This document shows positions 7,503 through 56,102 of a DNA stretch of 64,000 nt, one piece after another. Made by a program: the position numbers and the translations under genes. The first letter of the stretch is position 1. The number at the start of each line of letters is the position of its first letter. The notes under the pieces were generated by a model. That model was not told where the DNA came from. It worked only from the letters and a program-made list of their open reading frames with translations, and did not search any database. The DNA lies in the IMG/VR virus record IMGVR_UViG_3300042511_000879, positions 1 through 64,000 of that record; one strand, written 5' to 3'.

Positions 7503-7853
7503 TTATAGACCGGCTAACGGATCCTCTTCTTCTCCACCTGCATCGCCTTCTGAATCTTTTTCAGCGTCCTTTTCTTTTTGAGCCACTTCTTCTTGATAAT
7601 CGTTAAAAAATTTAACTAGAGTAAACATATCCTCTTCGGTAAACGCTGTATTTCCGTATTCTTTATAGAAATATTCTTTAAATTCTTTTTCACTTTTTGA
7701 GGACAATATAGTCCCTAAAATTTCAGTAGATTTAATTTCTTTTCCTGAGTCAAGAGTTACATCATCAACTACTACTTTTGAATCTTCTCCTGCATCAATT
7801 GCATCTTCTTGAAGAGAGCTAGTAAATTCTTCAAATGTTTTAATTATTTTCAT
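7503..7853 (-). CDS. Small acidic prohead/internal protein with CTS-like leader
   Basis: MKIIKTFEEF leader; lies between portal and protease, the T4 gp67/68 position. Confidence 0.65.
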   Translation of the reverse strand: MKIIKTFEEFTSSLQEDAIDAGEDSKVVVDDVTLDSGKEIKSTEILGTILSSKSEKEFKEYFYKEYGNTAFTEEDMFTLVKFFNDYQEEVAQKEKDAEKDSEGDAGGEEEDPLAGL

Positions 7854-7874
7854 TTTATTTATATTTTTATTTAA

Positions 7875-35589: not shown

Positions 35590-35955
35590 TTATTTAATTA
35601 TTACGAATAAACCTCCTCTAGATGACGCAGATTCAGTGTTACCATTAGCTAAAGTAACTTTAGATAGTACTTCACCACCTAATTCTTTAGCAACTTCTTC
35701 TGCTACTGAATTTACTTCAAAGAAAACAACACTACCTCCATTATCTGCTAGTATGTTATATCCATCGCCTTCTACTACATTTGGCTTTTTAATCATTTTA
35801 TTGATAGGACCATTTACTGATTTACTATCAATGTTAATAATGTAAGTACCACTGCGACTTTTATAAGCTTTTGGACTTTGAGCATTTTCTATAGGCTCAT
35901 ATACATTATGGTCCGATTCATTTACAAAATCTTCGAATAGTTTAATGTGTTTCAT
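35590..35955 (-). CDS. CTS-leader hypothetical protein
   Basis: MKHIKLFEDFVNE leader. Confidence 0.75.
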   Translation of the reverse strand: MKHIKLFEDFVNESDHNVYEPIENAQSPKAYKSRSGTYIINIDSKSVNGPINKMIKKPNVVEGDGYNILADNGGSVVFFEVNSVAEEVAKELGGEVLSKVTLANGNTESASSRGGLFVIIK

Positions 35956-35983
35956 CTTTGAGATATATTTCTTTTATATATTC

Positions 35984-37408: not shown

Positions 37409-37419
37409 TTTGTTTATTT

Positions 37420-37695
37420 TTAAGTTCTTAATTTATACTTAGGATTTTTAATTTGTTTCAAAATAATTTGTTTTTTTAAAATTATTCTTAGCCAATAGAG
37501 ATTTACAATCCATTCTAGCTCCTCTGTTTGAATATTGTCTTCGAGAGCAGTAATCATTATGAATGTGTCGATCATCTGTTTGGCTGATTCTAGTTGCCTC
37601 AGAGTATCACATGATTCGATAGTCACATTTATCTTTTCAGTGGCCAGTTCTGACCATCTAACATAATTGTCTGGTTTAAAAAAATATTGCATCAT
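37420..37695 (-). CDS. Hypothetical protein
   Basis: 91-aa ORF downstream of a TGAAAC-N17-TATAA promoter. Confidence 0.55.
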   Translation of the reverse strand: MMQYFFKPDNYVRWSELATEKINVTIESCDTLRQLESAKQMIDTFIMITALEDNIQTEELEWIVNLYWLRIILKKQIILKQIKNPKYKLRT

Positions 37696-37704
37696 TGTTA
37701 AATT

Positions 37705-37735
37705 AAAAAAACCTCAGTAGTTATACTGAGGTTTT
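37705..37735 (-). terminator. Intrinsic terminator ending the internal-protein block
   Basis: AAAACCTCAGTA/TACTGAGGTTTT stem. Confidence 0.75.
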
Positions 37736-37761
37736 AAATATTGTTTCAATTTTATTATTTG

Positions 37762-38538
37762 TTACTTTAAATAACCATAATCATCTAATTTTCCATTATG
37801 ACGAAGTTCTTGGTATCTACTACCTAAATCAAAAAGAGTACCAAAATGATTTCCATTTTTATCAAAGAAATAAATGGTATCTCCATCTTCTTTATATTCG
37901 TATCTTTCTTTCATATTTCGCAAAAGATCAGTTTTTAAACCAACTAAAATTTTACTTTTAGAATTACTATAATCTACGATTTTTTGCACAGATTCATTAA
38001 TAAATTGTTCAAAGGATTTAAACTTCTTTAAGAACTCTTTACGTCTCTTTTTTTCCTCTTCCTCATCCTCTTTGTCATCTTTCCCAAAATTTGGAATGTC
38101 TCCAGAACCGACTTCAGTTTGTGAAGGTAGAGCAGTTGCTCCCATTCCTCCAATACTTTCAGGAGAAACCATCTCATCTAATTCATGATAACCGTCGTTT
38201 GCCTGTTTAATATAATTATAAGACTGTGAAATATGGTCTTGCAACCATCCTGGTAAGTCCTTTTCTTCTCTTCCAATTTTCTGAAGTAATTCACCAACTG
38301 CTTTTGAAATTGCATTAAGTTGACTCATTGCCATTCCAACTTCATGGTCTTCAGCTTCTTTAACATATTCAGGAAGTCCTTCGTGTTTTGTACTTGCAAA
38401 ATCTTTCAATTGTTGAAGTGTCATAGAATCTGCAAGGTCTTTAACCTCTTGGCTTGCATCTTTAGGGTCCATATCTCCTTTTTTAAGAGCGTATGCCATT
38501 CCCATTAATTGTTGTTGTGCTTTACTCGTACTTGGCAT
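37762..38538 (-). CDS. Multi-module protein with DUF3008-like N-terminus and an internal CTS-like motif
   Basis: MPSTSKAQQQLMGMA...LKDFASTKHEGLP; internal KSFEQFINES. Confidence 0.65.
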   Translation of the reverse strand: MPSTSKAQQQLMGMAYALKKGDMDPKDASQEVKDLADSMTLQQLKDFASTKHEGLPEYVKEAEDHEVGMAMSQLNAISKAVGELLQKIGREEKDLPGWLQDHISQSYNYIKQANDGYHELDEMVSPESIGGMGATALPSQTEVGSGDIPNFGKDDKEDEEEEKKRRKEFLKKFKSFEQFINESVQKIVDYSNSKSKILVGLKTDLLRNMKERYEYKEDGDTIYFFDKNGNHFGTLFDLGSRYQELRHNGKLDDYGYLK

Positions 38539-38539
38539 A

Positions 38540-39076
38540 TTACTTTTGGTCTATTTGTATGATTTCAGAACCTCTGATTTCAACGTTATTTTCTCCAATT
38601 TCGGCATCATATCCACCGTAAATGTCTTCTCCACCTGCAATTGCAGTATTTAACATACCTCCTAATTTGTTCTTAAATTTAGAACCATCAACATCATCCA
38701 TAAAACCAATATTAATTACAAAGTCTCCGGGAATTCTAATATGTAAAGGAGCACCATCTCTATTCAATCTATTAATAGTATCTGGTTCCCATGAAAGATT
38801 TAGTCCTTTGACGTGTACATATACAACTTGGTCCATATCTTTTACAACCTTTTTAATTTCATCTAGGATGATTTTTTCGGCAGTTTTGGTAAAATCCCAC
38901 CATGCACCATTAACCTCTTCTAAAGTATCTGCTGCATCTCCTTCAAAAGTGGCAGTTTCAATTTCTTTTTTAAAAGCCTGCATAACTTTACCAATAATAC
39001 CTTTAGAGGTATAAGGTCCAGTCATTCTGTATGCTTTTTCATTTAAGAAATCTTCAAATAATTTTATGTGTTTCAT
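38540..39076 (-). CDS. CTS-leader hypothetical protein
   Basis: MKHIKLFEDFLNE. Confidence 0.75.
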   Translation of the reverse strand: MKHIKLFEDFLNEKAYRMTGPYTSKGIIGKVMQAFKKEIETATFEGDAADTLEEVNGAWWDFTKTAEKIILDEIKKVVKDMDQVVYVHVKGLNLSWEPDTINRLNRDGAPLHIRIPGDFVINIGFMDDVDGSKFKNKLGGMLNTAIAGGEDIYGGYDAEIGENNVEIRGSEIIQIDQK

Positions 39077-39522
39077 TATTTTATAGGATTTTTATTCATT
39101 GCAGCGTCTTGGTTTTTCTCTTGCCAATTGTAAGATACTTTGTCTTCAGTAATAGGTCCACCTTTTGCCCATGTGTAACATGTTCGAGCTGAATGGCATT
39201 TAAAATGATGCATCCAACAGTATCCTAATTTACCATCGTCGTCACTAATCTCGCCAGGCATACAGTCTAACATTCTTGGTGATATGTCGAAAGCAACACA
39301 ATTTCCACATGTTGATTTTTTAGCAGCTTCAACACTAGTATTCCAATGATCAGCTATATGCTCCCAAAAACCTGCAGGTTCATCAACATTAAGAGGTCCA
39401 TATTCAATAAAGTCTGCTTTAATTGCGCGGTCTCTATTATTAGTGTTAACCTTTAAGTCCTTTGTCGGTACAGGGCAACTAGTTGCTTCTTTAAATTCTT
39501 CGAAAAGTTTTATAGTTTTCAT
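39076..39522 (-). CDS. CTS-leader Cys-rich protein, HiPIP-like metal-binding motif
   Basis: MKTIKLFEEFKE; CGNC..F...GYC..H.FKC...TC..W. Confidence 0.65.
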   Translation of the reverse strand: MKTIKLFEEFKEATSCPVPTKDLKVNTNNRDRAIKADFIEYGPLNVDEPAGFWEHIADHWNTSVEAAKKSTCGNCVAFDISPRMLDCMPGEISDDDGKLGYCWMHHFKCHSARTCYTWAKGGPITEDKVSYNWQEKNQDAAMNKNPIK

Positions 39523-39523
39523 A

Positions 39524-40117
39524 TTATTTTACCTTAGGGTATTTAGTCTTAATTTCTTTATAGAATTTCTTGTAATTAGTAGCATTCATGTGGTCTTCAG
39601 CTGCTCTAAGCAAATCATCTAAAGAAGTCCATTGAACATCCGCTAATTGATCTTGTGTTGTTGAAACTTGAGCCATACGATCTAAAATTCCAAAAATAAT
39701 ATCATCTGTTAATTTTGTTTCGGTACTTGGTTTTTCTTTACCTGCTGCTCTTTTAAGTGTCCACCAATCAACTTTCTTTGGAATTTGATATGATACAATT
39801 CCTCTTTGTTGGTCATTGGGACTAGTTTCTCCAGGTTTACCAATATTACTTTTAATATTATCCAGGTCTAAGTTATCATCAAATCCTTTTAATGCCTTTT
39901 GAATATCTTTAGTTGAATCTATATCTGCCATATCTGGTTCACTCCTAAGAAACATTCTATCAGTTGAACTCATATTAAAATAAATTCCTTTAACAGGTGA
40001 AATAGCTTTGATAAATTGTTTTTGATACTCATCAGAATCTAGACCATTGTTATATCCTGGAAAGGTTTGCATCCTAGCTTCACCTACAAATTGTTCAAAT
40101 AATTTGATATGTTTCAT
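39524..40117 (-). CDS. CTS-leader hypothetical protein
   Basis: MKHIKLFEQFVGE. Confidence 0.75.
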   Translation of the reverse strand: MKHIKLFEQFVGEARMQTFPGYNNGLDSDEYQKQFIKAISPVKGIYFNMSSTDRMFLRSEPDMADIDSTKDIQKALKGFDDNLDLDNIKSNIGKPGETSPNDQQRGIVSYQIPKKVDWWTLKRAAGKEKPSTETKLTDDIIFGILDRMAQVSTTQDQLADVQWTSLDDLLRAAEDHMNATNYKKFYKEIKTKYPKVK

Positions 40118-40118
40118 C

Positions 40119-42860
40119 TTACCAAGCGTAATTTTTAGCGTCTACTTTCTTAACGTAGTCAACGATTGTTTTAGAACTTTCTTTCATTCTACCTTCATAG
40201 AATTTTCCGCTATAACCAGATGCAGCCTCTTTTTCAATATCTACAGCGTATGCAACATATCTGTTATATTCATCTAGGATGTTTTTCATTAAGTTAGAAG
40301 CATCGCTCATTTTGATTTCTCTACCTCTAGGGTCTAGTCCAATAATAAGTTCTCCATATTTTCCTTTTTCAGCTTTAGTTAGGGCATCTTTGATTTGTGT
40401 AGCAAGAGTATCAATAGCTCCTAATACAATTGAATCCATCGGCATTTCTGAAGCTTTTTGGGCTAATATTTGGTTATAACGGGCTTTGTTTTCTGCTTTA
40501 AAGTCTTTATCACTTTTAAAAGCAGTAGCTCCACGTTTATCATCGGCTCTTTTTGATACTAATGACGTTGTAGAATATCTTGCTTTAAGGACATCTAAGT
40601 CAATAACATAAACAGTATCGGCTAATTCAGCTACTTTAGTAAGTGAAGTGATTCCAGAACCATCGTATCTTTTACTGTCTCTTTTGTCAAATCCTGCTGC
40701 ATCTTCTCTAGAACTTGCTTTTGATATAGTTTCAGTTTTTGAGTATCTATTATATCCGGTAGAGTACCATTCATTTTGTCCATTAGTCATTGCTAATAGG
40801 GTGTTTGATTGGATAATTCCATTATTGTATCTACTTGGAATTCTACCAGCTTCAATATATGGATTCTCTTTTTGGTTAGTTACTATATAGAAGTAAATTG
40901 CGTTAGCTCTTTTTTCTTTACGAGCAGTTTGAGGGTCCATTTCAATAATGTCATAATCTTCGATTTGGTCAATTGCCAATTTTGAGAAGTTATAGAATGC
41001 TCCTGCAAGGTCTTTAGTACCTGCACTTCCTACAGAGAAAAGGTTAGATAATTTAGCACTTTTAAATGCCTCGTTTAATGTACCTTCATTTAATTTGTTT
41101 TCAACAAATTCTGCGAAAGATTCGTAAATAAATTTTGTTTTCATATCGTTGTTATTTTTGTTTTCGTCTAAGTCAATAACCCAAGCATATTCAACGTACT
41201 TGATAGCGTCTTCAGGATTTACATCCCATTTAAGTGCCGCATCTAATACGATTTTTCTTGTAATTTTGCTATTTGGGTATTTTGCAATTTCTTTTTCAAA
41301 TCCTCCAGGAACCCAAATCTTAGGTGCCTTAGTAGTAGCTTCAAATATTTGCTTTAATCTTCCTTTTAATAGTTTTTTAACCTCTATTGACATATTGGTT
41401 TTATTATTATCGAATTCTTTAGAATTTCCTAATTCTTCTCTATTAAAAGCATTTAATTTATCATCAAAATACTCATCAGCATCAAGGTCTTCTATATTAT
41501 CGTCAACATCTAACCATTCATCATCTACAAATTGTTTAGCTAATTTTTTATAGTTTAATCCTTCATTCATAGTAGCTTCAGAAACCATAACATTTTTAAG
41601 GATTCTTGAACCTGTTTTTGATAGGGTAATTCCATCTTCAGATACATTAAAACACTGAGCGTTTCTTCTCAACCATCTTTTAGAATCTGTAGTCATTTCT
41701 TTAAGAATATTATTAAAATCTTCTTGAGAAAGTTTACCATCTTTAATAGCTTCTAGCATTTTGTTACGAACTTTAGCAGCTTTACCTACAGTAACTGCAG
41801 GATTTTTATCAGTATAATGCCTTTTGATTGTGATGTTTCTTTCATTAACTACTGATTCTTTAATAGCATTTTTAACATCGCCTAATGTAGATATTTCCAT
41901 GTTGGTTGCAACTGTTAAAAAATCAAATGCATCTTCATATTCTCCACGATCCCAGAGTTTGTCAAATTCTTCAATATCATCTTCATCACCGATTAGAGCA
42001 TATCCTGGATCAATTCCAATTTCTTTATTAATAAAGTCGATAGTTTTTTTAATGTCAGATTTTTTAAATCCAGTTTCATTAACTACTGATTCATTTAAAC
42101 CAAACTCTCTGATATCGTTTTGTCCATTGTCAAATGATTTTTGAATAGCCGCTAATGCTTCTTTTCTATCGCTTGCAGATTCAAACCCAATTTCGTCATC
42201 GCTAAATGCTTTTGAATATTTTTTCCATGAGTCTTTTGATAAATCAGCAACTTTTCTTAAGTTGATTACTGTAGATTCTATACGGTATTTTGAAGCAGTT
42301 CCGGATGGGTAATTGTTAGTTGATAAACCTAAAACTAAATTAGCCTCATCTAAAGAAGATTCTTTAATAATTTTATCATCTTTATGGAAAATGTATTCCA
42401 TTTTCTTACCAGTTTTCTTAAATTCACCGCTATAAGAAACTTCTCCATCTTTATTTTTAAAAACTTTATCAACTACAAATTCTCCATCAGATGAAGCGTA
42501 AGGAATTACAATACTTCCTTTTTTAACAGTAGCTTCATTTGTAACTGATTCTGATAATTTATTAAGATTTTTAACAATAGTATCTACTGAATCATTCCAT
42601 TTACCATAAACAGGACTTCCAGGTACGGCATTGTTTACAACATCACCATTTGCATGTATAGTATAAGAACCTCCATCGAACTCTTCTCCATTACAATCGA
42701 TGTCGAATGAATCCTCTTCTAATGTTCTAGTGTTAACGGTGCATTTGCTACCATCTGCCTTTGAAAGGGCTTTAGCATAAAGTTCTGCAACTTTTTTAGT
42801 TTTTTCTACAGATAACCCCATCGGTTTAGAGCTTTCGTTTAAGAATTGATCAAAATTCAT
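40119..42860 (-). CDS. Modular internal-head polyprotein (913 aa)
   Basis: MNFDQFLNE leader; repeated ESVTNE/ESVVNE linkers; late promoter. Confidence 0.65.
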   Translation of the reverse strand: MNFDQFLNESSKPMGLSVEKTKKVAELYAKALSKADGSKCTVNTRTLEEDSFDIDCNGEEFDGGSYTIHANGDVVNNAVPGSPVYGKWNDSVDTIVKNLNKLSESVTNEATVKKGSIVIPYASSDGEFVVDKVFKNKDGEVSYSGEFKKTGKKMEYIFHKDDKIIKESSLDEANLVLGLSTNNYPSGTASKYRIESTVINLRKVADLSKDSWKKYSKAFSDDEIGFESASDRKEALAAIQKSFDNGQNDIREFGLNESVVNETGFKKSDIKKTIDFINKEIGIDPGYALIGDEDDIEEFDKLWDRGEYEDAFDFLTVATNMEISTLGDVKNAIKESVVNERNITIKRHYTDKNPAVTVGKAAKVRNKMLEAIKDGKLSQEDFNNILKEMTTDSKRWLRRNAQCFNVSEDGITLSKTGSRILKNVMVSEATMNEGLNYKKLAKQFVDDEWLDVDDNIEDLDADEYFDDKLNAFNREELGNSKEFDNNKTNMSIEVKKLLKGRLKQIFEATTKAPKIWVPGGFEKEIAKYPNSKITRKIVLDAALKWDVNPEDAIKYVEYAWVIDLDENKNNNDMKTKFIYESFAEFVENKLNEGTLNEAFKSAKLSNLFSVGSAGTKDLAGAFYNFSKLAIDQIEDYDIIEMDPQTARKEKRANAIYFYIVTNQKENPYIEAGRIPSRYNNGIIQSNTLLAMTNGQNEWYSTGYNRYSKTETISKASSREDAAGFDKRDSKRYDGSGITSLTKVAELADTVYVIDLDVLKARYSTTSLVSKRADDKRGATAFKSDKDFKAENKARYNQILAQKASEMPMDSIVLGAIDTLATQIKDALTKAEKGKYGELIIGLDPRGREIKMSDASNLMKNILDEYNRYVAYAVDIEKEAASGYSGKFYEGRMKESSKTIVDYVKKVDAKNYAW

Positions 42861-42884
42861 ATGATTTTTATATTTATTTATGTT

Positions 42885-44756
42885 TTATATATCTTTGTTA
42901 ATAAATTGTTCGAATGTCATGATTTCATTAGTAACTGATTCTGTAACAACTCCCATTGCATCTTCAATTTTAGATTTAAGTTCATTATACATCGAATGAA
43001 CTGCCTTTGGTGTTAGATTGTTAAATTGTTTTTCATTACCATCTAATAGAGCATTTCTAACTGCAGTAGCCGAAATATCATCGTCAGTTCTTGGAATTTC
43101 AAAAAGTCCAAAATCAGCTCTACAATTTAATTGGTCTCTATAAGAATCATTATTAACTTGATAACCATAGCTTGTCATTCTATCACTTCCCGTTCCCCAA
43201 AGTACTGGCTCATATTTAGGTCTCATTTCATTAAACATGATATCGATACCTCCAGTTGGAACTACAAATATTTCTTTTAAGAATGGATATTGTTTTTTAA
43301 CATGATTGAACATATCGATTTGGGTCTTTTCATCGTATGGTCTGCTAAATTCATCACCTTTCTTTTTGGTTTTTGATTTAACTAGGAATACAACTACTGG
43401 AAATCCATTCTCTTTATGTATAGTTTCTAAAACTTTTGCATGGCCTAATGTAAACGGCTGGAATCTTCCAACAAACATATTTACTGGTTGTTTTCCTTGT
43501 TCAACATGAGTAAGTTTAAGTGCCTCGTTTAAATTAACTGAAGATTTGATTTTATCACGCAACATAAAATTTTGGTAGTCATAGATTGCATTTTCATCAG
43601 TGTTTTCAACAAATATTTTATCGTTGATTTTTTCAATAATTTCGTTTAAACGTTCCATAGTATCTTGGTCTATTAAATCTGAAGTTTTAGTTCTTTTCTT
43701 TCTAAAAGAACCTAAAATCATTTTAAAAAGTTCTGCTAGAATATCGTTAGAAACATATTTTAAGGTTTTTTCATCGGTAATATACTTTGAGTTTAATTTA
43801 AAAGATTCTGCTGATGAAAATTCAGCGCTTTCAAAATTAACTCCAATATATTTTGAAGAGTTCTTGTCAACATATTCATTAAATATAATTGACATTATTT
43901 CAAGATATCGATAATCTGCTCGGTCATCTTCAAGCTGTACTTCATCGATCTTAAATTGAGTTATAAATTCTAAAAAGTCGGTGACTGCAATTTGATACAT
44001 GTGACTTGAAGAGTTATCAATTGGATTTTTTCTTGTAAAATCTTCTAATTTAAAAGATTTTATAGATTTTTCATCGATAAAATTAACAACCAATCCATCG
44101 AATTCCTCATCAATATCAGAATTTAGGGCAGTTTCAAAAGCACTAGGATTAAAAAGTTTAACTATTTTACTGGTAAAACTTAATTTGTCCTTTGTTTCTG
44201 GTAAATAGTCGAATGATTCACTAAATTCTCTATCACTCATTCCAAGCAATTCTAGTAACTCATCTCTTTGTAATTGAGATAAATAGCCATCAAATAATAT
44301 GCTTGGCTGTTGAACATCAAGAATTTTTGCCCATTTATTTAAGATTACCGGGTCATTAATAGTTTTCTTAACTTTATTACCTTCTCCAAGTTGTTGGATA
44401 TGCGTTAAGATTAAATTATTTTTTGGAGTTTTTATGTATTTAATTTTAGATACATTAACTTCTGGTAGGTATTCAAAACCAAATCTCCAATCAATTGGCA
44501 TTTGATTTTTAGTAGCACTTGGTAAACTTTGCATGTAGTTGATTGCAATCTCATATAGAGATATAATTGTTCTATCAACTAAATTTAGTTTGTCTGAATT
44601 TGAAGATTTAAAATATTCAAATCCATCAAGATTTCTTTTAACAAGAAATGTAGGCGCAGAAACTTTCTCAGTTACTAACACCCTATTTTTTAACATCTCA
44701 ATAAAGGTTTCTCTATTGGTTTCGTTAAAATACTCTCTTAATTTTTGTAATGCCAT
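42885..44756 (-). CDS. Cytidyltransferase-like (HIGH nucleotidyltransferase) protein with degenerate ligase-like N-terminal domain
   Basis: FVGRFQPFTLGH, GSDR, ISATAVR; N-terminal VTEKVSA...FDGLVV. Confidence 0.75.
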   Translation of the reverse strand: MALQKLREYFNETNRETFIEMLKNRVLVTEKVSAPTFLVKRNLDGFEYFKSSNSDKLNLVDRTIISLYEIAINYMQSLPSATKNQMPIDWRFGFEYLPEVNVSKIKYIKTPKNNLILTHIQQLGEGNKVKKTINDPVILNKWAKILDVQQPSILFDGYLSQLQRDELLELLGMSDREFSESFDYLPETKDKLSFTSKIVKLFNPSAFETALNSDIDEEFDGLVVNFIDEKSIKSFKLEDFTRKNPIDNSSSHMYQIAVTDFLEFITQFKIDEVQLEDDRADYRYLEIMSIIFNEYVDKNSSKYIGVNFESAEFSSAESFKLNSKYITDEKTLKYVSNDILAELFKMILGSFRKKRTKTSDLIDQDTMERLNEIIEKINDKIFVENTDENAIYDYQNFMLRDKIKSSVNLNEALKLTHVEQGKQPVNMFVGRFQPFTLGHAKVLETIHKENGFPVVVFLVKSKTKKKGDEFSRPYDEKTQIDMFNHVKKQYPFLKEIFVVPTGGIDIMFNEMRPKYEPVLWGTGSDRMTSYGYQVNNDSYRDQLNCRADFGLFEIPRTDDDISATAVRNALLDGNEKQFNNLTPKAVHSMYNELKSKIEDAMGVVTESVTNEIMTFEQFINKDI

Positions 44757-44777
44757 CTCTTTGTTTTTATTAATTAA

Positions 44778-45245
44778 TTATGATGAACTTTTTGATACTT
44801 CAAATACTCTTCGTTGTTCGTCTAAATAAACTTTAGTATCTACCCAAATAGAACCTAACTTTGTTTCTTTCTTAGGGTCAGTTATATCAGTAAATGTCAA
44901 TAGGGTTACATTAACCTCTTCTCCTCTTTTAGACTGTAGTGCTAATTGATAATCATTCAACCAATACTGTGAATTGTGAATTCTGTATTTTGGAGTATCG
45001 ATGATATTTCCATGTGGTTTTACTTCAAAATATTGATAGTGAACAAACATAGTTTCTCCTTCAAAATCCCAAATCCATTCCATTGCCGTATCTGTTGTTT
45101 TTGCAGTAAGTGGCATTAATTTCTTAAAGAATGTTTCGTCTAATGAATTAGATTTCTTTAATACTTCAGGTTTAAAGTTATTAATTGTTGATTCATATAG
45201 TTGTCTAGTTTCAACAAATTTTTCGAATAGTTTTACGTGTTTCAT
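44778..45245 (-). CDS. CTS-leader hypothetical protein
   Basis: MKHVKLFEKFVE at 45245. Confidence 0.7.
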   Translation of the reverse strand: MKHVKLFEKFVETRQLYESTINNFKPEVLKKSNSLDETFFKKLMPLTAKTTDTAMEWIWDFEGETMFVHYQYFEVKPHGNIIDTPKYRIHNSQYWLNDYQLALQSKRGEEVNVTLLTFTDITDPKKETKLGSIWVDTKVYLDEQRRVFEVSKSSS

Positions 45246-45246
45246 T

Positions 45247-46536
45247 TTATCTTCCATATTTTATAATTCCCATCAACTGATTAATCGCAGCGAATGTTCC
45301 TGTTAATTTGTACATGTGTCCTTTGTATGAAAATACAATACCTTCAGTCGGTATAATAGATTGGATTCCTCCAATTCTTTCAAGTCTATCAAGTTCTTTT
45401 GCAACTTTCTCGATTTGAGTAAGGTCTCCATTTAGTTTAATTTTATCGGCTTCAGTTCTGATTTCATTATGTAGCCTTTGCATTTCTTTTTCAGGAGAAG
45501 CAGCAACAAAGTTACTTGCATTCTTTAAGATAACACTTCCAAGTTCTAAGAAAAGGTCTTCAAATGGTCTAATGTTTTCTTTGAATTTTACTTTAAAGTC
45601 TTCTTTGTCAAATTTCTTAACAGCATCTGATTGTTGTTTTGTTAATTCTTTGTCTAAAGAGCGCATGTTTAATGTTTTCTTATCATCATATGCCCATCTA
45701 AGTAATAATCCTTCTTTAATATTTTGTGGATATTCTCCGAATAAATTTTCAATTTGCTCTCTCCACCACATTTCATGGTATCTTGCAACTGCATCAGCAT
45801 CTGTTAATTTATAACGATTTTTAAGAGCATCAAGTTTTCCTAGGAATTTAGACTGATTCTCTTCAAAATTCATATCTTTTTGTAGTTTAATAACCTGCGG
45901 AGGGATTATTGTAAATGTTTTTCCAATATCAGCGTTTAGGGATTTAAGTACTCCAGTAACACTTTTTGCCGCACTATTGTCATCTCCAACTATATTTCCT
46001 GCACCATCAGTTTTCTTGATACCATGGAATTGAATTACATCAACATCGTAGTGAATTACATTAGGATTTGCAGAATATATCAACTCCATGTTCATGAAGT
46101 TTAGGCCATTCTGGAACACTTCCTCTTGTGTTTTTGCCGGCAACTTTATAAGCAGGGTTGCTAAATCAGCGGCTGCAAATTGGAAAGTATCTTGTACTAA
46201 TTTGCTAGCATGTCCCTCAAATTTATTTTGGAAATCCTTAAGGCTCATAGGATTTTGCAACTCAGTTTTATTTCTGGCAAATTTAACTTCACCATTTTGA
46301 ATAGTTGCAAATACGTTTTGACCGTCTGTTTTTTCAGTAGGTTCCTCTTCAAAGTTCAATTCACCTTGAAGTCCACCAATAATCATATTCTTGAAGTCTC
46401 CGAATGTTAGGTCATTATTATCGAATGGATGGGACATGTGTCCAGCAGCTCCACCTTCTAATAGTAACTGTTCATTCAATTTAACTTCATACTTTTCAGT
46501 TATGAATCGATTAAAATTAAGGATTCTTGTTTTCAT
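45247..46536 (-). CDS. Polynucleotide-ligase-fold nucleotidyltransferase (DUF6267-like)
   Basis: EGGAAGHMSHPFD, motif I TEKTDG, motif IV PTEGIVF, YKLTG.F..INQ. Confidence 0.65.
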   Translation of the reverse strand: MKTRILNFNRFITEKYEVKLNEQLLLEGGAAGHMSHPFDNNDLTFGDFKNMIIGGLQGELNFEEEPTEKTDGQNVFATIQNGEVKFARNKTELQNPMSLKDFQNKFEGHASKLVQDTFQFAAADLATLLIKLPAKTQEEVFQNGLNFMNMELIYSANPNVIHYDVDVIQFHGIKKTDGAGNIVGDDNSAAKSVTGVLKSLNADIGKTFTIIPPQVIKLQKDMNFEENQSKFLGKLDALKNRYKLTDADAVARYHEMWWREQIENLFGEYPQNIKEGLLLRWAYDDKKTLNMRSLDKELTKQQSDAVKKFDKEDFKVKFKENIRPFEDLFLELGSVILKNASNFVAASPEKEMQRLHNEIRTEADKIKLNGDLTQIEKVAKELDRLERIGGIQSIIPTEGIVFSYKGHMYKLTGTFAAINQLMGIIKYGR

Positions 46537-46543
46537 ATTTTAA

Positions 46544-47092
46544 TTACTTTGCAACTCTGTTGCTTTTAATGTTTTCCATTGCGATATCATCAATCAATCT
46601 TGTAAAAGAACTTAGGGTTGCAGCGGTATAAAATCCATCTTCACCAGGACCTGCATTGTTTGCTCCTACTTTATAAGCTTGAATGTGTCCAGCAAGTTCT
46701 AATGCTGCATCTCCCCATCCGGTGTCATTTCCTCCATTAGATTTAGCACGTTTAATTGCATCATTAGTAAGTGCTACTAAATCGTTTGCACCTCTAAATG
46801 CTTCGGGTTTTTTACTACTTTTCTTACCAGAAACGTTATTGTGTTCAATATCATCAAGGCCCATATTATTAACCAGTTCTTGGAATAATGATGGTGTTTG
46901 TGGACCATACCATTTGTCTGCCTTTGGGTCAATAGTACTATCAATATATTTTCCAAGGTCTGTTAGGTAATCAAGTACATTTTGACCATTACCGCCACGT
47001 GCAAATATTTTTTTAGAGGCGTCTTTTACGTATTTTACGTAGTCATTTTTTCCTTCGTTAATAAATTGTTCGAATAATTGTATGTGTTTCAT
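46544..47092 (-). CDS. CTS-leader hypothetical protein
   Basis: MKHIQLFEQFINE. Confidence 0.75.
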   Translation of the reverse strand: MKHIQLFEQFINEGKNDYVKYVKDASKKIFARGGNGQNVLDYLTDLGKYIDSTIDPKADKWYGPQTPSLFQELVNNMGLDDIEHNNVSGKKSSKKPEAFRGANDLVALTNDAIKRAKSNGGNDTGWGDAALELAGHIQAYKVGANNAGPGEDGFYTAATLSSFTRLIDDIAMENIKSNRVAK

Positions 47093-47093
47093 A

Positions 47094-47366
47094 TTATAAA
47101 TTGCTTAGTTTATTGTTTAAATCAAGTATTGCAGAATTAATTTTTATTTTCTGATTATCAAGTTCAAGAAGTGACATTTTAAGAGTTGCTATTTGCGCTT
47201 GAATTGCAGATTTTGGGTCATCTACCTTTTGATTCAAATCATTTACTTTATTTCTAAGTTCTTTTCTTTTTAGGAATATGTCGTGTGATTTAGCCGACAA
47301 ATCAGATCTTGCATCTGTATAGTCAGATTCATTTAAGAACTCTTCAAATAAGTTAATGTGTTTCAT
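47094..47366 (-). CDS. CTS-leader coiled-coil protein
   Basis: MKHINLFEEFLNE at 47366. Confidence 0.72.
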   Translation of the reverse strand: MKHINLFEEFLNESDYTDARSDLSAKSHDIFLKRKELRNKVNDLNQKVDDPKSAIQAQIATLKMSLLELDNQKIKINSAILDLNNKLSNL

Positions 47367-47430
47367 AGTGTAAATATAATAAAAATACCTGACATGGTAA
47401 AACATCAGGTATTATTTATTTGAATTATTT

Positions 47431-50400
47431 TTAAGATTCTTGAGCTATCATTGCATCGATAACATCAGATGAAATCCATCCTTTTGCTTTAACAAATTCT
47501 TTTGCAAGTTTTAAAACTTTCTTTTCTCCAGCAGATGTTACCTCATTTTCTTTACCGTTTTCATTATTATCATTCCAATCTTCAACGCAACCTTCTACTT
47601 CTTGCTGTAGTTGAAAATTACCTGGATTTTTACTTTTTGTAGAATCTTCATGATAATCTTCCCAGTAGTTTGCATCAAATGCTTCAGTAACAACTGATTC
47701 TCCAAGAGAACTTGTTAGCATTCCAACCGCAGCTCCATAATCTCCATCACATTTTTTAAGAATTCCATCAACTACTTCTCCAGCTTTAGCTTCATCAAAG
47801 TCTTCTCCGAATGCTTTTTTCAAAACAGCCATCGCATATTCTTTAAATTCGTCATCAGATTTAACTTCAGCTTCATTAACCGTAGATTCAAATACTAACG
47901 TAACATCCTTAACGTTAAGAGTTTTAACTAAATCTCCTAATTTATCATATAAATCATTTAATTCATCTTCAGTGTGGTGTTTATATCCTTTCTTTAAGTT
48001 TATATTTGCACTACCAAATTTAGCCATATAATCATCTTTTCCTTCAGTAACTACTGATTCTTTAGCAGATCCAGCGGCTTTAGCTCTTTTTAATTGGGCT
48101 TTTTTGATTCTGTCCGTTTCTTCTCTATGGTCTCTTAATTTCTTTAATTTCTTTAATTGCTCAGCTTTACGAGTTGCTTCAGCACTTGGACCAGAACGTT
48201 GATAACCACTTTCAGTTACTGTAGATTCAGCAACATTGTTTTCCCACCATGTTTTAAGTTCATTAAAATCAGATTTACCCATGTTAGAAATCATGTATTC
48301 GATAATATCATTGTCGTAATCTTCAGCCTCATCTCTGTAACCTCCTGGAGTATCGATATAATCTTTACCCATGATTCTTTTGATTCTTTGTTCTGGCATA
48401 CCATCGATTTCCTCACAGAATTCTTCAAAGTCTTTAGTTGATTTGAATTTTTCAGCTTCATTAACTACTGATTCATTTGCGTAAGCTCCTAATTCGCTGA
48501 ATTTAACTTTTTTACCTGCTTTTTCTTCATCATTTTCATCAGAATGCGCTAATAAACCTGCATCAAATAATCTTTTAAGAACTTCTCCTTTAACCAGACT
48601 ATAGTCGATAGCATTACTTGAATTTTCCCAAGTATCACCTACATATTCTGGATCGATCCAACCATAACCTGATTTAATATCTTTAATTAAGGTCTGTACA
48701 TCTTTGTCAAATTGCTTAGTACCTTCATTAACTACTGACTCGATCAATTCCATATTATATGCATTTGAAATGTCAGTTTTAATTTCTCCAGTTTCTTTTG
48801 AATGCAACTTCATAGTTTTACCATCAGGATTTAATTTAATGAATGTAACTTCACCGTAGTCTGATGTGTATTTGTGGTTTGGCTTTAAGTCTTTTGCTTT
48901 ACCTTCGTAAACAGTTCCAGCAACCTCATCATAATTGTTAAATTTCTTAGCAGATTTTTTAACAGTGTTTAATTGTTTAATGATAGAATCAATTACTCCA
49001 GGGTCAATATCATTTCCAGCATTTGCACTATTAAATAAGTTGGTTAAATTTTTAGATGCTAAGTATAATTCGTTACCAATAACATCTTTTGGTAATCGGT
49101 TGAATGCTTCAGAAACGGTAGATTCATTACATAATGAATAAAGTTCTTGCGCAATCTTTTTTGCTTTTGAACCAGAATGTCCGTAAGTTTCTACAGTATC
49201 TAATGCATCTTCCATCGACATACCATGTAGTTCTTCCATATCACCATCTCTTTCATCTAAAAGATCGTCTAGTATATTTGAAGCCTCATCAGCCTCTTTT
49301 GATTCAGAAACTACCAATTCTAGGTCTTTATCTTTATCAGCAATTGTTGCATCAAGTTCAGCTTCTAGGGCTTTCTTTTGAGCAGTCATTTCTTTTAATT
49401 TTCCAAGTAATGATTCTTTAGCAGAACCTTCAGCAACTTTCCAATTTTGTGCGGTAGCTTGCATTGAAGTTGTTAACTTAGACCAGTCATATTGAATTTT
49501 AGCAATTGAACGAGCTTCATCAATAGATTCTACTGATTCATTTTTCTTTTGAGATGCTTTTAAATCTTCAAGTTCTTTTTTCAATTTAGGGTCTAATTGT
49601 CTTTCAATTCCCCAGTTAAAACTTGCATTTATTAACATATTCAATGGTAAGTTTTCATTTTTCTTACCGAATACGGATGTTTTAATCCAGTTTAAATAAT
49701 GTTCAGCTAAATCTTTTGATAATTTAATACCTTCTGCTCTTGAAGAATCTCCATCAACAATAGATTGAAGTATCTTTTTAGCCATTCCGTGTGAACCTTC
49801 ATTAACTACAGATTCTTGTATAAAACTAATATCTTTAAGATATAATTCATAGTCAGAACCATCTTGTGTATATCCAGTAAAAGAATCTCCTTTGTCATCT
49901 TTTAATTCTTTAGGGTCAACTGAATACCAGTCATTTCCAACAAAAACTTCTACAGGTTTTCCACTAGTTTGAGTATATAAGTCATGTGCAGTTTTACCTG
50001 TGAATTTGGTTCTTTTAGCCTCTTCGACTTTGTAAGTTTCACCATCAACTTCGAATTCATCTTCGTCATCTTCTTTTGCTTTTTTAACAGCAGCTCCGAA
50101 CGCATTACCTTCGTTTTTTTCGCTTTCGCTAAGACCAGTGTCTTTCTTAATGGTTACTTTATATTTTTTACCATTAAATTCAAACTCAGATTTTCCATCT
50201 TGTTTAGCTTTACTGGCTGCAAAAATAAATGCATTTCCCTCTTCTAGTTTTTTAGGTTCTCCTAATTTATTAAGCTCATCTTCAATATCTTCTGCCTCAT
50301 CTTCTGAAACTGTTCCAAACATTTTGTTAATTAGGGCTTGTTTTTTCTCTTCATCTAACTCAGATAGAGAAGTTAAACCCATTTCATCAAGGATTGCTCC

Positions 50401-50520
50401 AATTTTACCAACAGTTTCCTGTCTTTTTGCATTGTTTGTTTCTCTTAGTTTCATTGTATTTTCCTGATTCTTAACTTCAGTAAAACTCTTAAATGAAGAG
50501 ATTTTGTTAACTTGTGCCAT
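47431..50520 (-). CDS. Modular internal-head polyprotein (1029 aa)
   Basis: KISSFKSFTE leader; about 9 ES[V/T]V[N/T/S]E linkers separating 60-100-aa modules; late promoter. Confidence 0.65.
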   Translation of the reverse strand: MAQVNKISSFKSFTEVKNQENTMKLRETNNAKRQETVGKIGAILDEMGLTSLSELDEEKKQALINKMFGTVSEDEAEDIEDELNKLGEPKKLEEGNAFIFAASKAKQDGKSEFEFNGKKYKVTIKKDTGLSESEKNEGNAFGAAVKKAKEDDEDEFEVDGETYKVEEAKRTKFTGKTAHDLYTQTSGKPVEVFVGNDWYSVDPKELKDDKGDSFTGYTQDGSDYELYLKDISFIQESVVNEGSHGMAKKILQSIVDGDSSRAEGIKLSKDLAEHYLNWIKTSVFGKKNENLPLNMLINASFNWGIERQLDPKLKKELEDLKASQKKNESVESIDEARSIAKIQYDWSKLTTSMQATAQNWKVAEGSAKESLLGKLKEMTAQKKALEAELDATIADKDKDLELVVSESKEADEASNILDDLLDERDGDMEELHGMSMEDALDTVETYGHSGSKAKKIAQELYSLCNESTVSEAFNRLPKDVIGNELYLASKNLTNLFNSANAGNDIDPGVIDSIIKQLNTVKKSAKKFNNYDEVAGTVYEGKAKDLKPNHKYTSDYGEVTFIKLNPDGKTMKLHSKETGEIKTDISNAYNMELIESVVNEGTKQFDKDVQTLIKDIKSGYGWIDPEYVGDTWENSSNAIDYSLVKGEVLKRLFDAGLLAHSDENDEEKAGKKVKFSELGAYANESVVNEAEKFKSTKDFEEFCEEIDGMPEQRIKRIMGKDYIDTPGGYRDEAEDYDNDIIEYMISNMGKSDFNELKTWWENNVAESTVTESGYQRSGPSAEATRKAEQLKKLKKLRDHREETDRIKKAQLKRAKAAGSAKESVVTEGKDDYMAKFGSANINLKKGYKHHTEDELNDLYDKLGDLVKTLNVKDVTLVFESTVNEAEVKSDDEFKEYAMAVLKKAFGEDFDEAKAGEVVDGILKKCDGDYGAAVGMLTSSLGESVVTEAFDANYWEDYHEDSTKSKNPGNFQLQQEVEGCVEDWNDNNENGKENEVTSAGEKKVLKLAKEFVKAKGWISSDVIDAMIAQES

Positions 50521-55733: not shown

Positions 55734-56102
55734 TTAGATTTTACTACCAAGAGAAGAACCAAGAGCGGCTCCTACTAGCCTTGAGGTTAACATGTCATAC
55801 ATAATACCACTTTGGATTCCTAAGATATTAGCAATCGTTTTCCCAATAGTTTTACCAAGTGCAAAACCTGCAAGTCCACCAAAGATACTACCTAAAATAC
55901 CTTCATTAGTAATCTCTTCGTTAAAAGCCTGGATGTTATATGTTCCATCCACGTTTTTATAAGTATTTGAAAATTGCTCTAGGGCAGCATCAACTTTTGC
56001 TTCAAGTTCTTCAGTCCATTCGGTTTGAAGAGACTCATTTAATACTTGAAGTTCAGTCTCTGTTATATTTTGTTCTGCTATGTAATCTAAAAATGTTTTC
56101 AT
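55734..56102 (-). CDS. Hypothetical protein with T4-type CTS and glycine-zipper C-terminus
   Basis: MKTFLDYIAE; ITNE followed by GILGSIFGGLAGFALG...GAALGSSLG. Confidence 0.65.
   Translation of the reverse strand: MKTFLDYIAEQNITETELQVLNESLQTEWTEELEAKVDAALEQFSNTYKNVDGTYNIQAFNEEITNEGILGSIFGGLAGFALGKTIGKTIANILGIQSGIMYDMLTSRLVGAALGSSLGSKI

Follow-up and report, generated by a model that had tools for sequence, protein, structure and literature searches.

A putative cargo polyprotein of a jumbo phage, built of small modules joined by protease-site-like linkers

Considering that a single long open reading frame (ORF) in a 64,000-nt stretch of an uncultured phage from lake metagenomes (IMG/VR record IMGVR_UViG_3300042511_000879, positions 1 to 64,000; hereafter the window) carries a short motif recurring between dissimilar segments, we sought to determine whether this ORF could encode a polyprotein that is cut by the phage's own head-maturation protease. 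The initial annotation had described a 1029-aa product with ES[V/T]V[N/T]E motifs every ~50-130 aa, a duplicated EGNAF unit near its N-terminus and a capsid protein beginning MANLINE, and had proposed that one packaging signal loads a chain of about 10 mini-proteins, released inside the head by the prohead protease, a strategy unusual for a dsDNA phage. Translation of the ORF confirmed that what it had described is present. The reading frame is free of internal stops, and strict matches to ES[VT]V[NTS]E start at residues 236, 466, 594, 683, 765, 821, 878 and 941, giving 8 matches against a mean of 0.0013 and a maximum of 1 in 20,000 composition-preserving shuffles. ESIDE is present at residues 331-335. 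Spacing between motifs was 56-128 aa for six intervals, while the first two blocks were longer (241 and 230 aa) but contained weaker sites, namely YKVEE↓A at 167, ESIDE↓A at 335 and ELVVSE↓S at 406 (the arrow marks the predicted scissile bond), and a further weak site, TVYE↓G at 539, split the third block. The duplicated EGNAF..KAK..EFE..G..YKV unit was also real, with each copy modelled as a helix plus a beta-hairpin.

To exclude trivial origins of the repeat, we examined its codons, its occurrence and possible translational explanations. The codons of the eight linkers differed at synonymous positions (TCT or TCA, GTA or GTT, ACC or ACA or ACG), as did those of the leaders described below, so the repeat is kept at the protein level and a DNA-level repeat or recombination signal was rejected. 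The ORF is not an assembly artefact, since the identical protein was called on 5 contigs and four lake-water runs held all sampled words of the gene. Internal translation starts after the linkers were rejected because the following residue is G, A or S and never Met, and no 2A-like ribosome-skipping motif (NPGP) was found in the translation. Within the window, the motif was otherwise confined to two neighbouring ORFs of 913 and 623 aa. Coordinates of all features are collected in Table 1.

Table 1. Features of the polyprotein ORF, its neighbours and the head genes within the window.
Coordinates (strand)	Feature	Details
47431..50520 (-)	Polyprotein ORF	1029 aa, 115 kDa, pI 4.8
50020..50520 (-)	Conserved N-terminal head, aa 1-167	Leader-like MAQVNKISSFKSFTE, a long helix and two EGNAF..YKV helix-hairpin units (aa 93-123 and 136-166); most invariant columns of the family lie in aa 1-70
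49798..50019 (-)	Module aa 168-241	Beta-rich, pLDDT about 85; ends in linker 1, ESVVNE (49798-49815); optional cassette, found in 31 of 262 relatives
49108..49797 (-)	Three cassettes, aa 242-335, 336-406 and 407-471	Separated by weaker sites ESIDE↓A (49516-49530) and ELVVSE↓S (49303-49320); end in linker 2, ESTVSE (49108-49125)
48724..49107 (-)	Two cassettes, aa 472-539 and 540-599	Separated by TVYE↓G (48904-48915); end in linker 3, ESVVNE (48724-48741)
48457..48723 (-)	Module aa 600-688	Ends in linker 4, ESVVNE (48457-48474)
48211..48456 (-)	Module aa 689-770	Ends in linker 5, ESTVTE (48211-48228)
48043..48210 (-)	Module aa 771-826	The only basic module (pI 10.2), a single long helix; ends in linker 6, ESVVTE (48043-48060)
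47872..48042 (-)	Module aa 827-883	Ends in linker 7, ESTVNE (47872-47889)
47683..47871 (-)	Universal three-helix module aa 884-946	Present in 120 of the 120 first hits; ends in linker 8, ESVVTE (47683-47700)
47434..47682 (-)	C-terminal module aa 947-1029	pLDDT about 90; always the last module when present
40119..42860 (-)	Second linker-bearing chain	913 aa; starts MNFDQFLNE; linkers ESVTNE (42534-42551), ESVVNE (42075-42092) and ESVVNE (41841-41858); shares modules with proteins that also share modules with the 1029-aa ORF
35590..47405 (-)	Array of genes whose products begin with the leader MKHIKLFExF[ILV]NE or a close variant	35590..35955, 38540..39076, 39076..39522, 39524..40117, 44778..45245, 45247..46536, 46544..47092, 47094..47366; ORF 42885..44756 starts with the looser LREYFNE and ends ESVTNE plus a vestigial leader
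5510..7432 (-)	Prohead protease	640 aa; S77 domain (aa about 12-160) aligns to T4 gp21 (PDB 5JBL) with His69 and Ser125 kept; candidate self-cut sites RVNE164↓A and FVNE171↓G (6920-6931); coiled-coil, scaffold-like tail with a duplicated 58-aa module that also occurs in a polyprotein relative (P0150)
5331..5351 (-)	N-terminal heptapeptide MANLINE of the gp23-like capsid protein (3819..5351)	Followed by AEI; predicted maturation cut
7503..7853 (-)	116-aa protein starting MKIIKTFEEF	Encoded between the portal and protease genes, the position of the T4 prohead-core genes 67 and 68

To test whether the motifs mark the boundaries of exchangeable units, we compared the ORF with its metagenomic homologues. 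More than 655 word-search hits and 1317 cluster representatives at 50% identity were recovered, 570-1116 aa long and with 0-8 sites each. When the chain was cut at the sites, 88% of module-homologue pairs were covered at 90% or more, compared with 30-42% when the cuts were shifted by 20-30 aa. This shifted-cut control replaced a cruder test of BLAST HSP break-points, in which enrichment at sites was only weak (0.22-0.35 against 0.13-0.18 expected at a tolerance of 8 residues) because HSPs run through the conserved linkers. Modules were present or absent as whole units and their order was permuted in relatives, for example in P0020 and P0023 (P numbers denote homologous proteins in our comparison). 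At least 192 module families occurred among 263 proteins, and a common module had up to 36 different upstream neighbours. A boundary logo from 503 distinct contexts read E at P6, S at P5, V at P4, V or I at P3, N or T at P2, E at P1 and A or G at P1', whatever module lay upstream, although some homologues had junctions with degenerate sites such as ESVVVE↓G. These results indicated that the chain behaves as a cassette holder whose ends are fixed and whose middle modules are gained, lost and reordered.

The occurrence of individual modules as stand-alone leader genes had been named beforehand as a test of the polyprotein reading, and such genes were found. P0245, P0259, P0216 and P0236 start with a leader ending ..F[IL]NE or ..YVAE, followed at once by the residues that start module 689-770, P0255 does the same for module 947-1029 after the leader MKHIPTFEQFLNE, and P0244 and P0254 do the same for the module starting at residue 242. 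Conversely, the window's own 182-aa leader gene (46544..47092) is an internal module of polyproteins in relatives. At least 13 other genes in the window carry such leaders, of which the 13-residue form MKHIKLFExF[ILV]NE resembles the T4 capsid targeting sequence (CTS) MKTYQEFIAE, in which targeting depends on residues 4 and 7 and processing on residues 8 and 10 (PMC9026906). The leader here aligns as F..F[ILV]xE, one window gene starts MKTFLDYIAE, and in IMG/VR, ORFs found through MKHIKLFE alone continue with an aromatic residue, then I, V or L, then N, S or T, then E. Internal head proteins of the T4 type have an N-terminal propeptide of 10-20 residues with aromatic targeting residues at CTS positions 4 and 7, and the neighbouring genes clearly fit this. 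The polyprotein itself has F10 and F13, but Glu follows the second Phe by two residues rather than three (F-x-x-F-x-E rather than F-x-x-F-x-x-E), which leaves its assignment to CTS-bearing proteins undecided. At the sequence level the processing position is kept in both elements, with leaders ending [ILV]-N-E and linkers ending V-[NT]-E followed by A, G or S, so that the linker retains the hydrophobic P3, the P1 Glu and the small P1' of the leader and lacks its two aromatic targeting positions.

We next asked whether the phage encodes a protease that could act on these sites. Profile searches matched the Portal_T4 (E=4.6e-70), Gp23 (E=5.5e-41) and Peptidase_S77 (E=1.4e-11) families, the protease scored better with S77 than with S80, and its catalytic His and Ser are kept in the alignment to T4 gp21. 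The gene order portal, small leader protein, protease, capsid protein follows that of T4 genes 20-67-68-21-22-23. The capsid protein starts MANLINE↓AEI, a related 462-kb phage has MIKLINE↓AEI, and T4 gp23 is cut at FLTE↓AEI. The core pattern [VILFT][VILT][NT]E↓[AG] occurred in the window only in the capsid protein (residue 7), the protease (residue 171), leaders, the two chains and one leader-bearing 122-aa protein. We regard this restriction as suggestive rather than significant, because from composition we estimate that only about 1-2 chance hits would be expected in the other proteins. The junction motif also agrees with the Glu-specific rule at P1 of this protease family (PMC5694885).

A further condition set in advance was that linkers falling inside folded domains would count against the proposal. 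In the AlphaFold model, all 8 linkers lay in, or within 2 residues of, coil segments with pLDDT<50 between confidently folded blocks (p about 1.4e-4 for random placement), and the pTM of 0.24 indicated no fixed arrangement between modules. What the modules do could not be inferred from similarity: profile searches against Pfam and PHROGs gave no family at E<=0.01 for the 1029-aa ORF, nor any for most leader genes, Foldseek against the PDB gave nothing below E=0.1 beyond weak small beta-barrel resemblances of the Tudor/SH3/Sm type, and the ESM Atlas returned only unnamed viral clusters. A tblastn search of both chains against GenBank phages found no match and a megablast search of 12 kb found none, so no cultured relative with a virion proteome could be used. 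The one-ORF, many-domains architecture expected of a viral polyprotein is supported by the folded blocks, by their whole-unit presence or absence and by their stand-alone homologues.

These cumulative results supported the interpretation first proposed, and we hold with moderate confidence that the ORF encodes a cargo polyprotein of the prohead core. In this view, the conserved N-terminal region (a leader-like FKSF-TE plus a helical domain) brings the 115-kDa precursor into the assembling scaffold core of a T4-type prohead, and the gp21-family (S77) protease, once activated, cuts after the Glu of each E-S-V-V-[NT]-E↓[AG] linker, and probably also at three or four weaker hydrophobic-x-E↓small sites. 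The eight linker cuts would create new N-termini at G242, A472, G600, A689, S771, G827, A884 and A947. The number of mini-proteins is more likely 9 to 13 than the about 10 first suggested; they would be separately folded, 6-27 kDa in size and in fixed stoichiometry, would stay in the head and would probably be delivered to the host with the DNA, like the T4 internal proteins. The linker then reads as a cut-only version of the leader, and in evolutionary terms the middle modules of the chain are also freely exchanged with stand-alone leader genes. What our analysis demonstrates is the motif and its excess over chance, selection on it at the protein level, the cassette behaviour of the modules, the positional equivalence of linker end and leader end, disordered linkers between folded modules, and a T4-like head module with an apparently intact protease. 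By contrast, cleavage of the linkers, the role of the prohead protease in it, packaging and injection of the products, and the functions of the modules (our guess is host-takeover or anti-defence mini-proteins) are inferred, cleavage from sequence logic only; there are no proteomic or biochemical data, no proteome of this uncultured phage is available, and neither cleavage nor encapsidation is shown by any data. A single packaging signal is plausible but was not tested, given the divergent spacing of the polyprotein's own N-terminus. Also weighing against this view, the gene lies about 40 kb from the head genes, next to the UvsW and gp32 replication genes, no T4-type late promoter precedes it, and most modules are acidic (pI 4.1-5.2), unlike the basic DNA-associated T4 internal proteins.

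Other explanations were considered less likely. The chain might be cleaved in the prohead but act as scaffold or core filler, like T4 gp22, gp67 and gp68, with its fragments expelled or left as inert internal peptides rather than delivered as effectors. Consistent with this unlikely but possible reading, the precursor and most fragments are acidic, like T4 gp67 and the acidic T4 internal peptides, a module of the protease tail recurs in the head region of a polyprotein relative, and the universality of the N-terminal head and module 884-946 suggests a structural role. However, the fragments are folded domains (pLDDT 70-94) of a size large for escape through shell pores, the middle modules are accessory, being present in only 31-148 of 262 relatives and shuffled, which fits arms-race cargo better than a scaffold, the same modules exist as leader-plus-module mini-genes, and a scaffold-like coiled-coil tail is already attached to the protease. 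Nor does the ORF resemble a gp22-type scaffolding core protein, a helical coiled coil degraded to small peptides, in position, since it is not encoded between the protease and capsid protein genes.

It is similarly unlikely that the protein is an uncleaved beads-on-a-string chain in which ESVVNE serves as a flexible spacer or a repeated short binding motif, for example for docking to the shell, portal or scaffold. Disordered linkers would fit an uncleaved tether equally well, and the N4 virion RNA polymerase and some polyvalent proteins are packaged unprocessed (PMC5512222), but a mere spacer would not need an invariant Glu followed by Ala or Gly across about 500 contexts, and would not be interchangeable in position with the end of an N-terminal leader in stand-alone genes; the same hydrophobic-[NT]-E↓AE pattern also sits at the capsid protein's N-terminus, where T4 is known to be cut. 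Cleavage by another protease or at another time, for example by a host or second phage protease in the cytoplasm, before packaging or after injection of the intact chain, appeared less likely still. The location among replication genes and the proposal that polyvalent proteins are processed by their own peptidases (PMC5512222) favour it, whereas no peptidase domain was found in the chain or its neighbours, the sites match the gp21-type rule and the capsid protein's own N-terminus, and the leaders resemble the T4 CTS, which is removed inside the prohead. Least likely, the linkers might be functionless scars of gene fusions, that is, decayed leaders of formerly separate genes. Fusion and fission clearly occur, since the 623-aa ORF ends with ESVTNE plus a vestigial leader, IMTFEQFINKDI, the 258-aa ORF has an internal FKSFEQFINE and the 913-aa ORF has an internal ESFAEFVENKLNE; yet scars would decay, and the linker instead has its own tight consensus, distinct from the leader, kept in hundreds of divergent contexts with synonymous codon turnover.

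We then compared the locus with related systems. The T4 internal proteins (IPI, IPII, IPIII, Alt), which carry the CTS and are processed by the gp21 prohead protease, share with it a short N-terminal leader with two aromatic residues three apart followed by hydrophobic-x-Glu (here in the neighbouring genes, as MKHIKLFExF[ILV]NE and MKTFLDYIAE), a gp21-family protease, gp20-type portal and gp23-type capsid protein in the same gene order, and hypervariable cargo sharing only the leader. In T4, however, each cargo protein has its own leader and is cut once, whereas here up to about 12 cargo modules are strung in one ORF behind one N-terminal element and separated by a cut-only linker, and no module showed sequence homology to a T4 internal protein. 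The head and ejection proteins of the jumbo phages phiKZ, 201phi2-1 and SPN3US, processed by the S80 prohead protease, likewise involve many head-internal proteins, cuts after Glu, several cuts within one precursor and a protease that cuts its own C-terminus (PMC5694885, PMC10052503). There the motif is A/S/G-x-E and the multiple cuts chop long N-terminal propeptides that are discarded, leaving one mature C-terminal product, whereas here P3 is Val, Ile or Leu, the site extends to P6, and every piece is a folded, separately conserved module.

Polyvalent proteins of phages and conjugative elements (Iyer et al. 2017, PMC5512222) are single polypeptides with 2-15 domains, proposed to be packaged and delivered with the DNA, that also show combinatorial domain shuffling. 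They are built from recognisable effector domains (ART, MuF, ParB, nucleases and others), often carry their own peptidase (a zincin-like MPTase) and usually sit by portal, terminase or MuF genes; here no known domain or peptidase was detected, the junctions carry a uniform protease-site-like linker and the context is UvsW/gp32. Polyproteins of eukaryotic viruses (picorna-like RNA viruses and, among dsDNA viruses, the asfarvirus pp220/pp62) similarly yield several mature proteins from one ORF through junction motifs matching the virus's own protease, but encode essential replication or structural proteins in a fixed order, whereas here the middle is an accessory, shuffled cassette set and the protease is inferred to be the capsid-maturation enzyme acting inside the prohead. 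No paper in the library searched contained ESVVNE, KLFEEF, KLFEDF or LFEQFINE, or combined phage polyprotein with prohead protease in this sense. What is new would be a departure from the T4 internal-protein system in which the cargo is inferred to be a cut chain.

If the linkers are cut in the prohead, tailed phages would have a polyprotein strategy for capsid cargo that has not been described. This would explain how jumbo phages can pack dozens of small proteins without each needing its own targeting interaction, and would define a very large, so far unannotated pool of small injected proteins, as none of the more than 1300 clusters at 50% identity has a Pfam or PHROG name, making these prime candidates for new anti-defence functions. 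It would also separate the address part of the T4-type CTS from its cut part in a natural system, which is directly usable for protein-delivery engineering in T4-like capsids. In its broadest form, which we consider about as likely as not, widespread freshwater jumbo phages with T4-like heads may use a "one ticket, many passengers" system, in which a single targeting element loads a shuffled string of up to a dozen unrelated mini-proteins, the maturation protease separates them at a portable six-residue cut-only tag, and modules move freely between polyproteins and stand-alone leader genes, forming a combinatorial injected arsenal of at least 190 module families, probably anti-defence or host-takeover factors.

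Finally, we searched the window for the T4 late promoter TATAAATA. The motif was not enriched (10 observed, 11.4 expected) and was absent upstream of the polyprotein ORF, which says nothing about expression timing, while one copy sits just upstream of the 116-aa gene, at 7856-7863.

To determine whether the proposed chain of small modules is real, we examined the polyprotein ORF on the minus strand and found an uninterrupted 1029-codon frame with eight matches to ES[VT]V[NTS]E, starting at residues 236, 466, 594, 683, 765, 821, 878 and 941. In 20,000 shuffles of the same residues, the mean number of matches was 0.0013 and no shuffle gave more than one. The six codons differed between copies at synonymous positions, indicating that the repeat is maintained at the protein level, and each linker was followed by Gly, Ala or Ser. 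Within the window, the same motif occurred in only two other places, three times in the 913-aa ORF and once near the C-terminus of the 623-aa ORF. The duplicated EGNAF...YKV unit (residues 93-123 and 136-166), the MANLINE start of the capsid protein and the protease domain in the 640-aa ORF were all as claimed in the initial annotation, so that its observation held in each of these points. The identical protein was called on five contigs and several lake-water metagenome runs contained the complete gene, so it is not an assembly artefact.

Coordinates of the ORFs considered in the window
Position	Strand	Length	Product
3819..5351			Gp23-family capsid protein
5510..7432	-	640 aa	Peptidase_S77 protein
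7503..7853		116 aa	leader-bearing protein at the gp67/68 position
7875..9464			Portal_T4
12067..14241	-	724 aa	protein with six BspA-type leucine-rich repeats
14246..16063	-	605 aa	T4 gp15-like tail-sheath-stabiliser N-terminus combined with collagen triple-helix repeats
28057..29454	-	465 aa	match to exonuclease and partial family-B DNA polymerase domains
35984..37408	-	474 aa	DUF2828/DUF7788 protein
37762..38538	-	258 aa	DUF3008 protein with internal leader
40119..42860	-	913 aa	second linker-bearing chain
42885..44756	-	623 aa	ORF ending in a linker and a vestigial leader
45247..46536	-	429 aa	leader-bearing protein with KxDG motif
46544..47092		182 aa	leader gene
47431..50520	-	1029 aa	polyprotein
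55734..56102	-	122 aa	protein starting MKTFLDYIAE
59585..61828 and 62546..63934	-		two large ORFs, probably paralogous fibre or baseplate proteins

The window comes from a jumbo phage. The longest contig carrying this exact protein is 236 kb, and the sources are freshwater lakes. The head module is T4-like, with the portal, 116-aa, protease and capsid genes lying in the order of T4 genes 20-67/68-21-22-23. The protease domain aligned to T4 gp21 (PDB 5JBL, E=5.5e-5), with His69 and Ser125 aligning to the two alanines of the crystallised chain. Comparison with wild-type T4 gp21 showed that the first of these is His85. The second corresponds to the catalytic serine. The nearest capsid proteins in GenBank phages were from an uncultured 462-kb phage (52% identity) and the Lak megaphages (38%). 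The polyprotein gene itself lies about 40 kb from the head genes, directly downstream of a UvsW-type helicase and near gp32, and this synteny is conserved in relatives.

At least 13 other genes in the window encode proteins that begin with MKHIKLFE[EDQ]F[ILV]NE or a close variant, including the 116-aa gene, the 429-aa protein and the 122-aa protein. The T4 capsid targeting sequence (CTS) is MKTYQEFIAE, in which mutagenesis placed targeting at residues 4 and 7 (the two aromatics) and processing at residues 8 and 10 (Ile and Glu) (PMC9026906). In T4, Asp at CTS position 10 blocks processing. The leader found here aligned as aromatic, x, x, aromatic, [ILV], x, E, and leader codons also varied at synonymous sites. 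The MKTFLDYIAE start of the 122-aa protein matched the T4 CTS at 6 of 10 positions with 3 conservative changes, and relatives in locus L003 start MKTFLDYIKE and MKTFDDYINE, making this a second, T4-like flavour of leader in the same genome. We then scanned IMG/VR for the back-translated octapeptide MKHIKLFE alone, which returned at least 120 stretches. In the 134 distinct ORFs found, the positions not constrained by the search continued as aromatic (128/134), I/V/L (89), N/S/T (80) and E (88). The leader is therefore a widespread, selected N-terminal element on otherwise unrelated proteins with a median length of 156 aa.

We next asked whether the linkers mark module boundaries. The family is very large, as a word search gave 655 hits among the 8000 candidates scored, and an exhaustive search gave 1317 representatives of 50%-identity clusters at E<=1e-3. 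Lengths ran from 570 to 1116 aa with 0-8 strict sites, and the first 22 residues were nearly invariant. When the query was cut at the eight strict sites plus four weaker ones (after residues 167, 335, 406 and 539), 88% of module-homologue pairs were covered at 90% or more, whereas only 30-42% were when the cuts were shifted by plus or minus 20-30 residues. Individual modules were present in 31 to 199 of 262 relatives, and their order was permuted in some. Splitting all 263 retrieved proteins gave at least 192 module families, with common ones having up to 36 different upstream neighbours. The N-terminal head (1-167) and the last two modules (884-946 and 947-1029) form a fixed frame, while the middle is variable. 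Across 503 distinct junction contexts, the logo was P6 E, P5 S, P4 V, P3 V/I, P2 N/T, P1 E, P1' A/G, whatever module lay upstream. In divergent relatives, the motif shrank to forms such as ESLNE|G, ESFLNE|A, ELVVSE|A and EAKVNE|A, in which a hydrophobic residue, N/T/S, Glu and then a small residue persisted. Selection on linker codons relative to flanking codons was not analysed. These results indicated that the linkers are cassette boundaries.

The initial annotation had proposed looking for individual modules as stand-alone leader genes in related phages, and this search was positive. The stand-alone proteins P0245, P0259, P0216 and P0236 consist of a leader ending in Glu, followed at once by the residues that open module 689-770 (AEKFKSTKDFEEF...). 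P0255 (98 aa) is a leader plus module 947-1029, P0244 and P0254 are a leader plus module 242-, and P0237 and P0173 have a leader plus an extra short linker before the module. In the opposite direction, the window's own 182-aa leader gene was 35-44% identical to internal modules of five polyprotein relatives. Compared with the leader, the linker keeps P6 Glu, P3 hydrophobic, P2 Asn/Thr and P1 Glu, and replaces the two aromatic residues (P7 and P4) with a variable residue and Val. In T4 terms, it keeps the processing determinants and drops the targeting determinants.

Fusion and fission intermediates were visible in the window. The 623-aa ORF, which has a cytidylyltransferase-like C-terminal domain and an HxGH motif, ends with ESVTNE followed by a vestigial leader (IMTFEQFINKDI) and a stop, 25 bases before the 913-aa ORF, which starts MNFDQFLNE. 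This looks like a recent fission, or a near-fusion, of adjacent leader genes. The 258-aa protein has an N-terminal DUF3008 domain, an acidic/basic low-complexity stretch and then an internal leader, FKSFEQFINE|S, before a C-terminal module, and is a two-part chain joined by a full leader rather than by the short linker.

To examine the link to the protease, we compared the linkers with sites in the head proteins. The capsid protein begins MANLINE|AEI and that of the 462-kb relative begins MIKLINE|AEI, while T4 gp23 reads ...FLTE|AEIGG at its maturation site after Glu65, consistent with the 65-residue propeptide stated in PMC5694885. Two linkers read VVNE|AE and TVNE|AE. Proteases of this family cut after Glu and trim their own C-terminus (PMC5694885), and here RVNE164|A and FVNE171|G follow the protease domain directly; docking of linker peptides in the protease was not modelled. 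The pattern [VILFT][VILT][NT]E|[AG] occurred in the window only in the capsid protein (residue 7), the protease (171), two leaders, the two chains and the leader-bearing 122-aa protein. However, only one or two chance hits would be expected elsewhere, as estimated from composition, so this is supportive rather than decisive. The protease ORF is three times the length of T4 gp21, and its tail (residues 343-470 and 609-616) contains a scaffold-like segment of heptad-like repeats (YTDYLAKKLEESIAYSEHVAEK...), a tandem duplicated 58-aa module (EAGIPAE...DVVDADGNVITGKPEDV) and a linker-like NESVVE near the C-terminus. It appears to be a protease-scaffold fusion with its own internal cut sites. The 58-aa module recurs in the head region of P0150, a polyprotein relative, which hints that polyprotein heads and the scaffold core share parts.

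Considering that linkers falling inside folded domains had been named in advance as evidence against the polyprotein reading, we ran AlphaFold2 with a 66-sequence alignment. The model had a mean pLDDT of 65 and a pTM of 0.24, which means confident blocks without a fixed mutual arrangement. All eight linkers lay in or within two residues of a predicted pLDDT<50 coil segment (p about 1.4e-4 for random placement), and the three weaker sites at 335, 406 and 539 also coincided with low-confidence segments. The predicted products are 6-27 kDa, most of them acidic (pI 4.1-5.2) and one basic (residues 771-826, pI 10.2). Their predicted N-termini are G242, A472, G600, A689, S771, G827, A884 and A947, with A168, A336, S407 and G540 as further candidates at the weaker sites.

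The best-supported reading of these cumulative results is a cargo polyprotein of the prohead core, which would be brought in through its conserved N-terminal region and cut by the S77 protease at the linkers, with the products staying in the head and the chain serving in evolution as a holder for shuffled cassettes. The earlier proposal that the prohead protease releases the modules inside the head is supported. The analysis itself demonstrated the motif and protein-level selection on it, the cassette behaviour of the modules, the positional equivalence of leader end and linker end, the disordered linkers between folded modules and a T4-type head module, whereas cleavage, the identity of the protease, packaging, delivery and module function are inferred from these, without a survey across IMG/VR of whether leader and linker genes co-occur with an S77 protease. 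Some points do not fit neatly, as the polyprotein's own leader has different spacing (F-x-x-F-x-E), the gene is far from the head genes, and the modules are acidic whereas T4 internal proteins are basic. Alternatives considered were that the chain is a cleaved scaffold filler, that it is an uncleaved tether, that it is cut by another protease or at another time, and that the linkers are neutral fusion scars.

The proposed system works like the T4 CTS and internal-protein system, of which several neighbouring genes look like ordinary members, and the new feature is the concatenation of many cargo modules behind one N-terminal element with a cut-only tag. No paper in the literature searched, which lacked most subscription journals so that absence there is not proof of novelty, mentions the motif, the leader or a phage capsid polyprotein of this kind. 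It differs from the multi-cut propeptides of phiKZ/SPN3US, where the pieces are discarded and the motif is A/S/G-x-E (PMC5694885, PMC10052503), and from polyvalent proteins, which have known effector domains, their own peptidase and a portal or MuF context (PMC5512222).

Other ORFs in the window were also noted. The 429-aa leader-bearing protein (MKTRILNFNRFITE) has a KxDG motif (EKTDGQN) typical of ligase or capping nucleotidyl-transferases but gave no Pfam, PHROG or PDB sequence hit. Its homologues are in Microcystis phage Mel-JY01 (35% identity, annotated cytidylyltransferase-like) and in two uncultured phages of 460-480 kb, and it may be an enzyme packaged in the head. The 474-aa DUF2828/DUF7788 protein (PHROG 850, annotated 'RNA-binding protein', E=6e-153) sits without a leader in the middle of the leader-gene array, a position conserved in L003. 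The 465-aa ORF matched only the exonuclease domain and the first third of the family-B DNA polymerase domain, suggesting that the polymerase may be split into two genes or interrupted. The 724-aa and 605-aa proteins are encoded next to each other, and the two putative fibre or baseplate paralogues share a near-identical N-terminus (..LK.I...D(S/T)DNIKLD.(V/I)NYNFDQL(V/I)ANGGGP.G). Outside the window, the ENA metagenome scaffolds L004 and L005 carry tandem arrays of five to eight small genes, each starting with a leader of another flavour (MKNHIPTFENFINE, MKNIPTFESFLNE), and one of them is a stand-alone copy of polyprotein module 689-770, indicating that leader-gene arrays exist outside this phage lineage.
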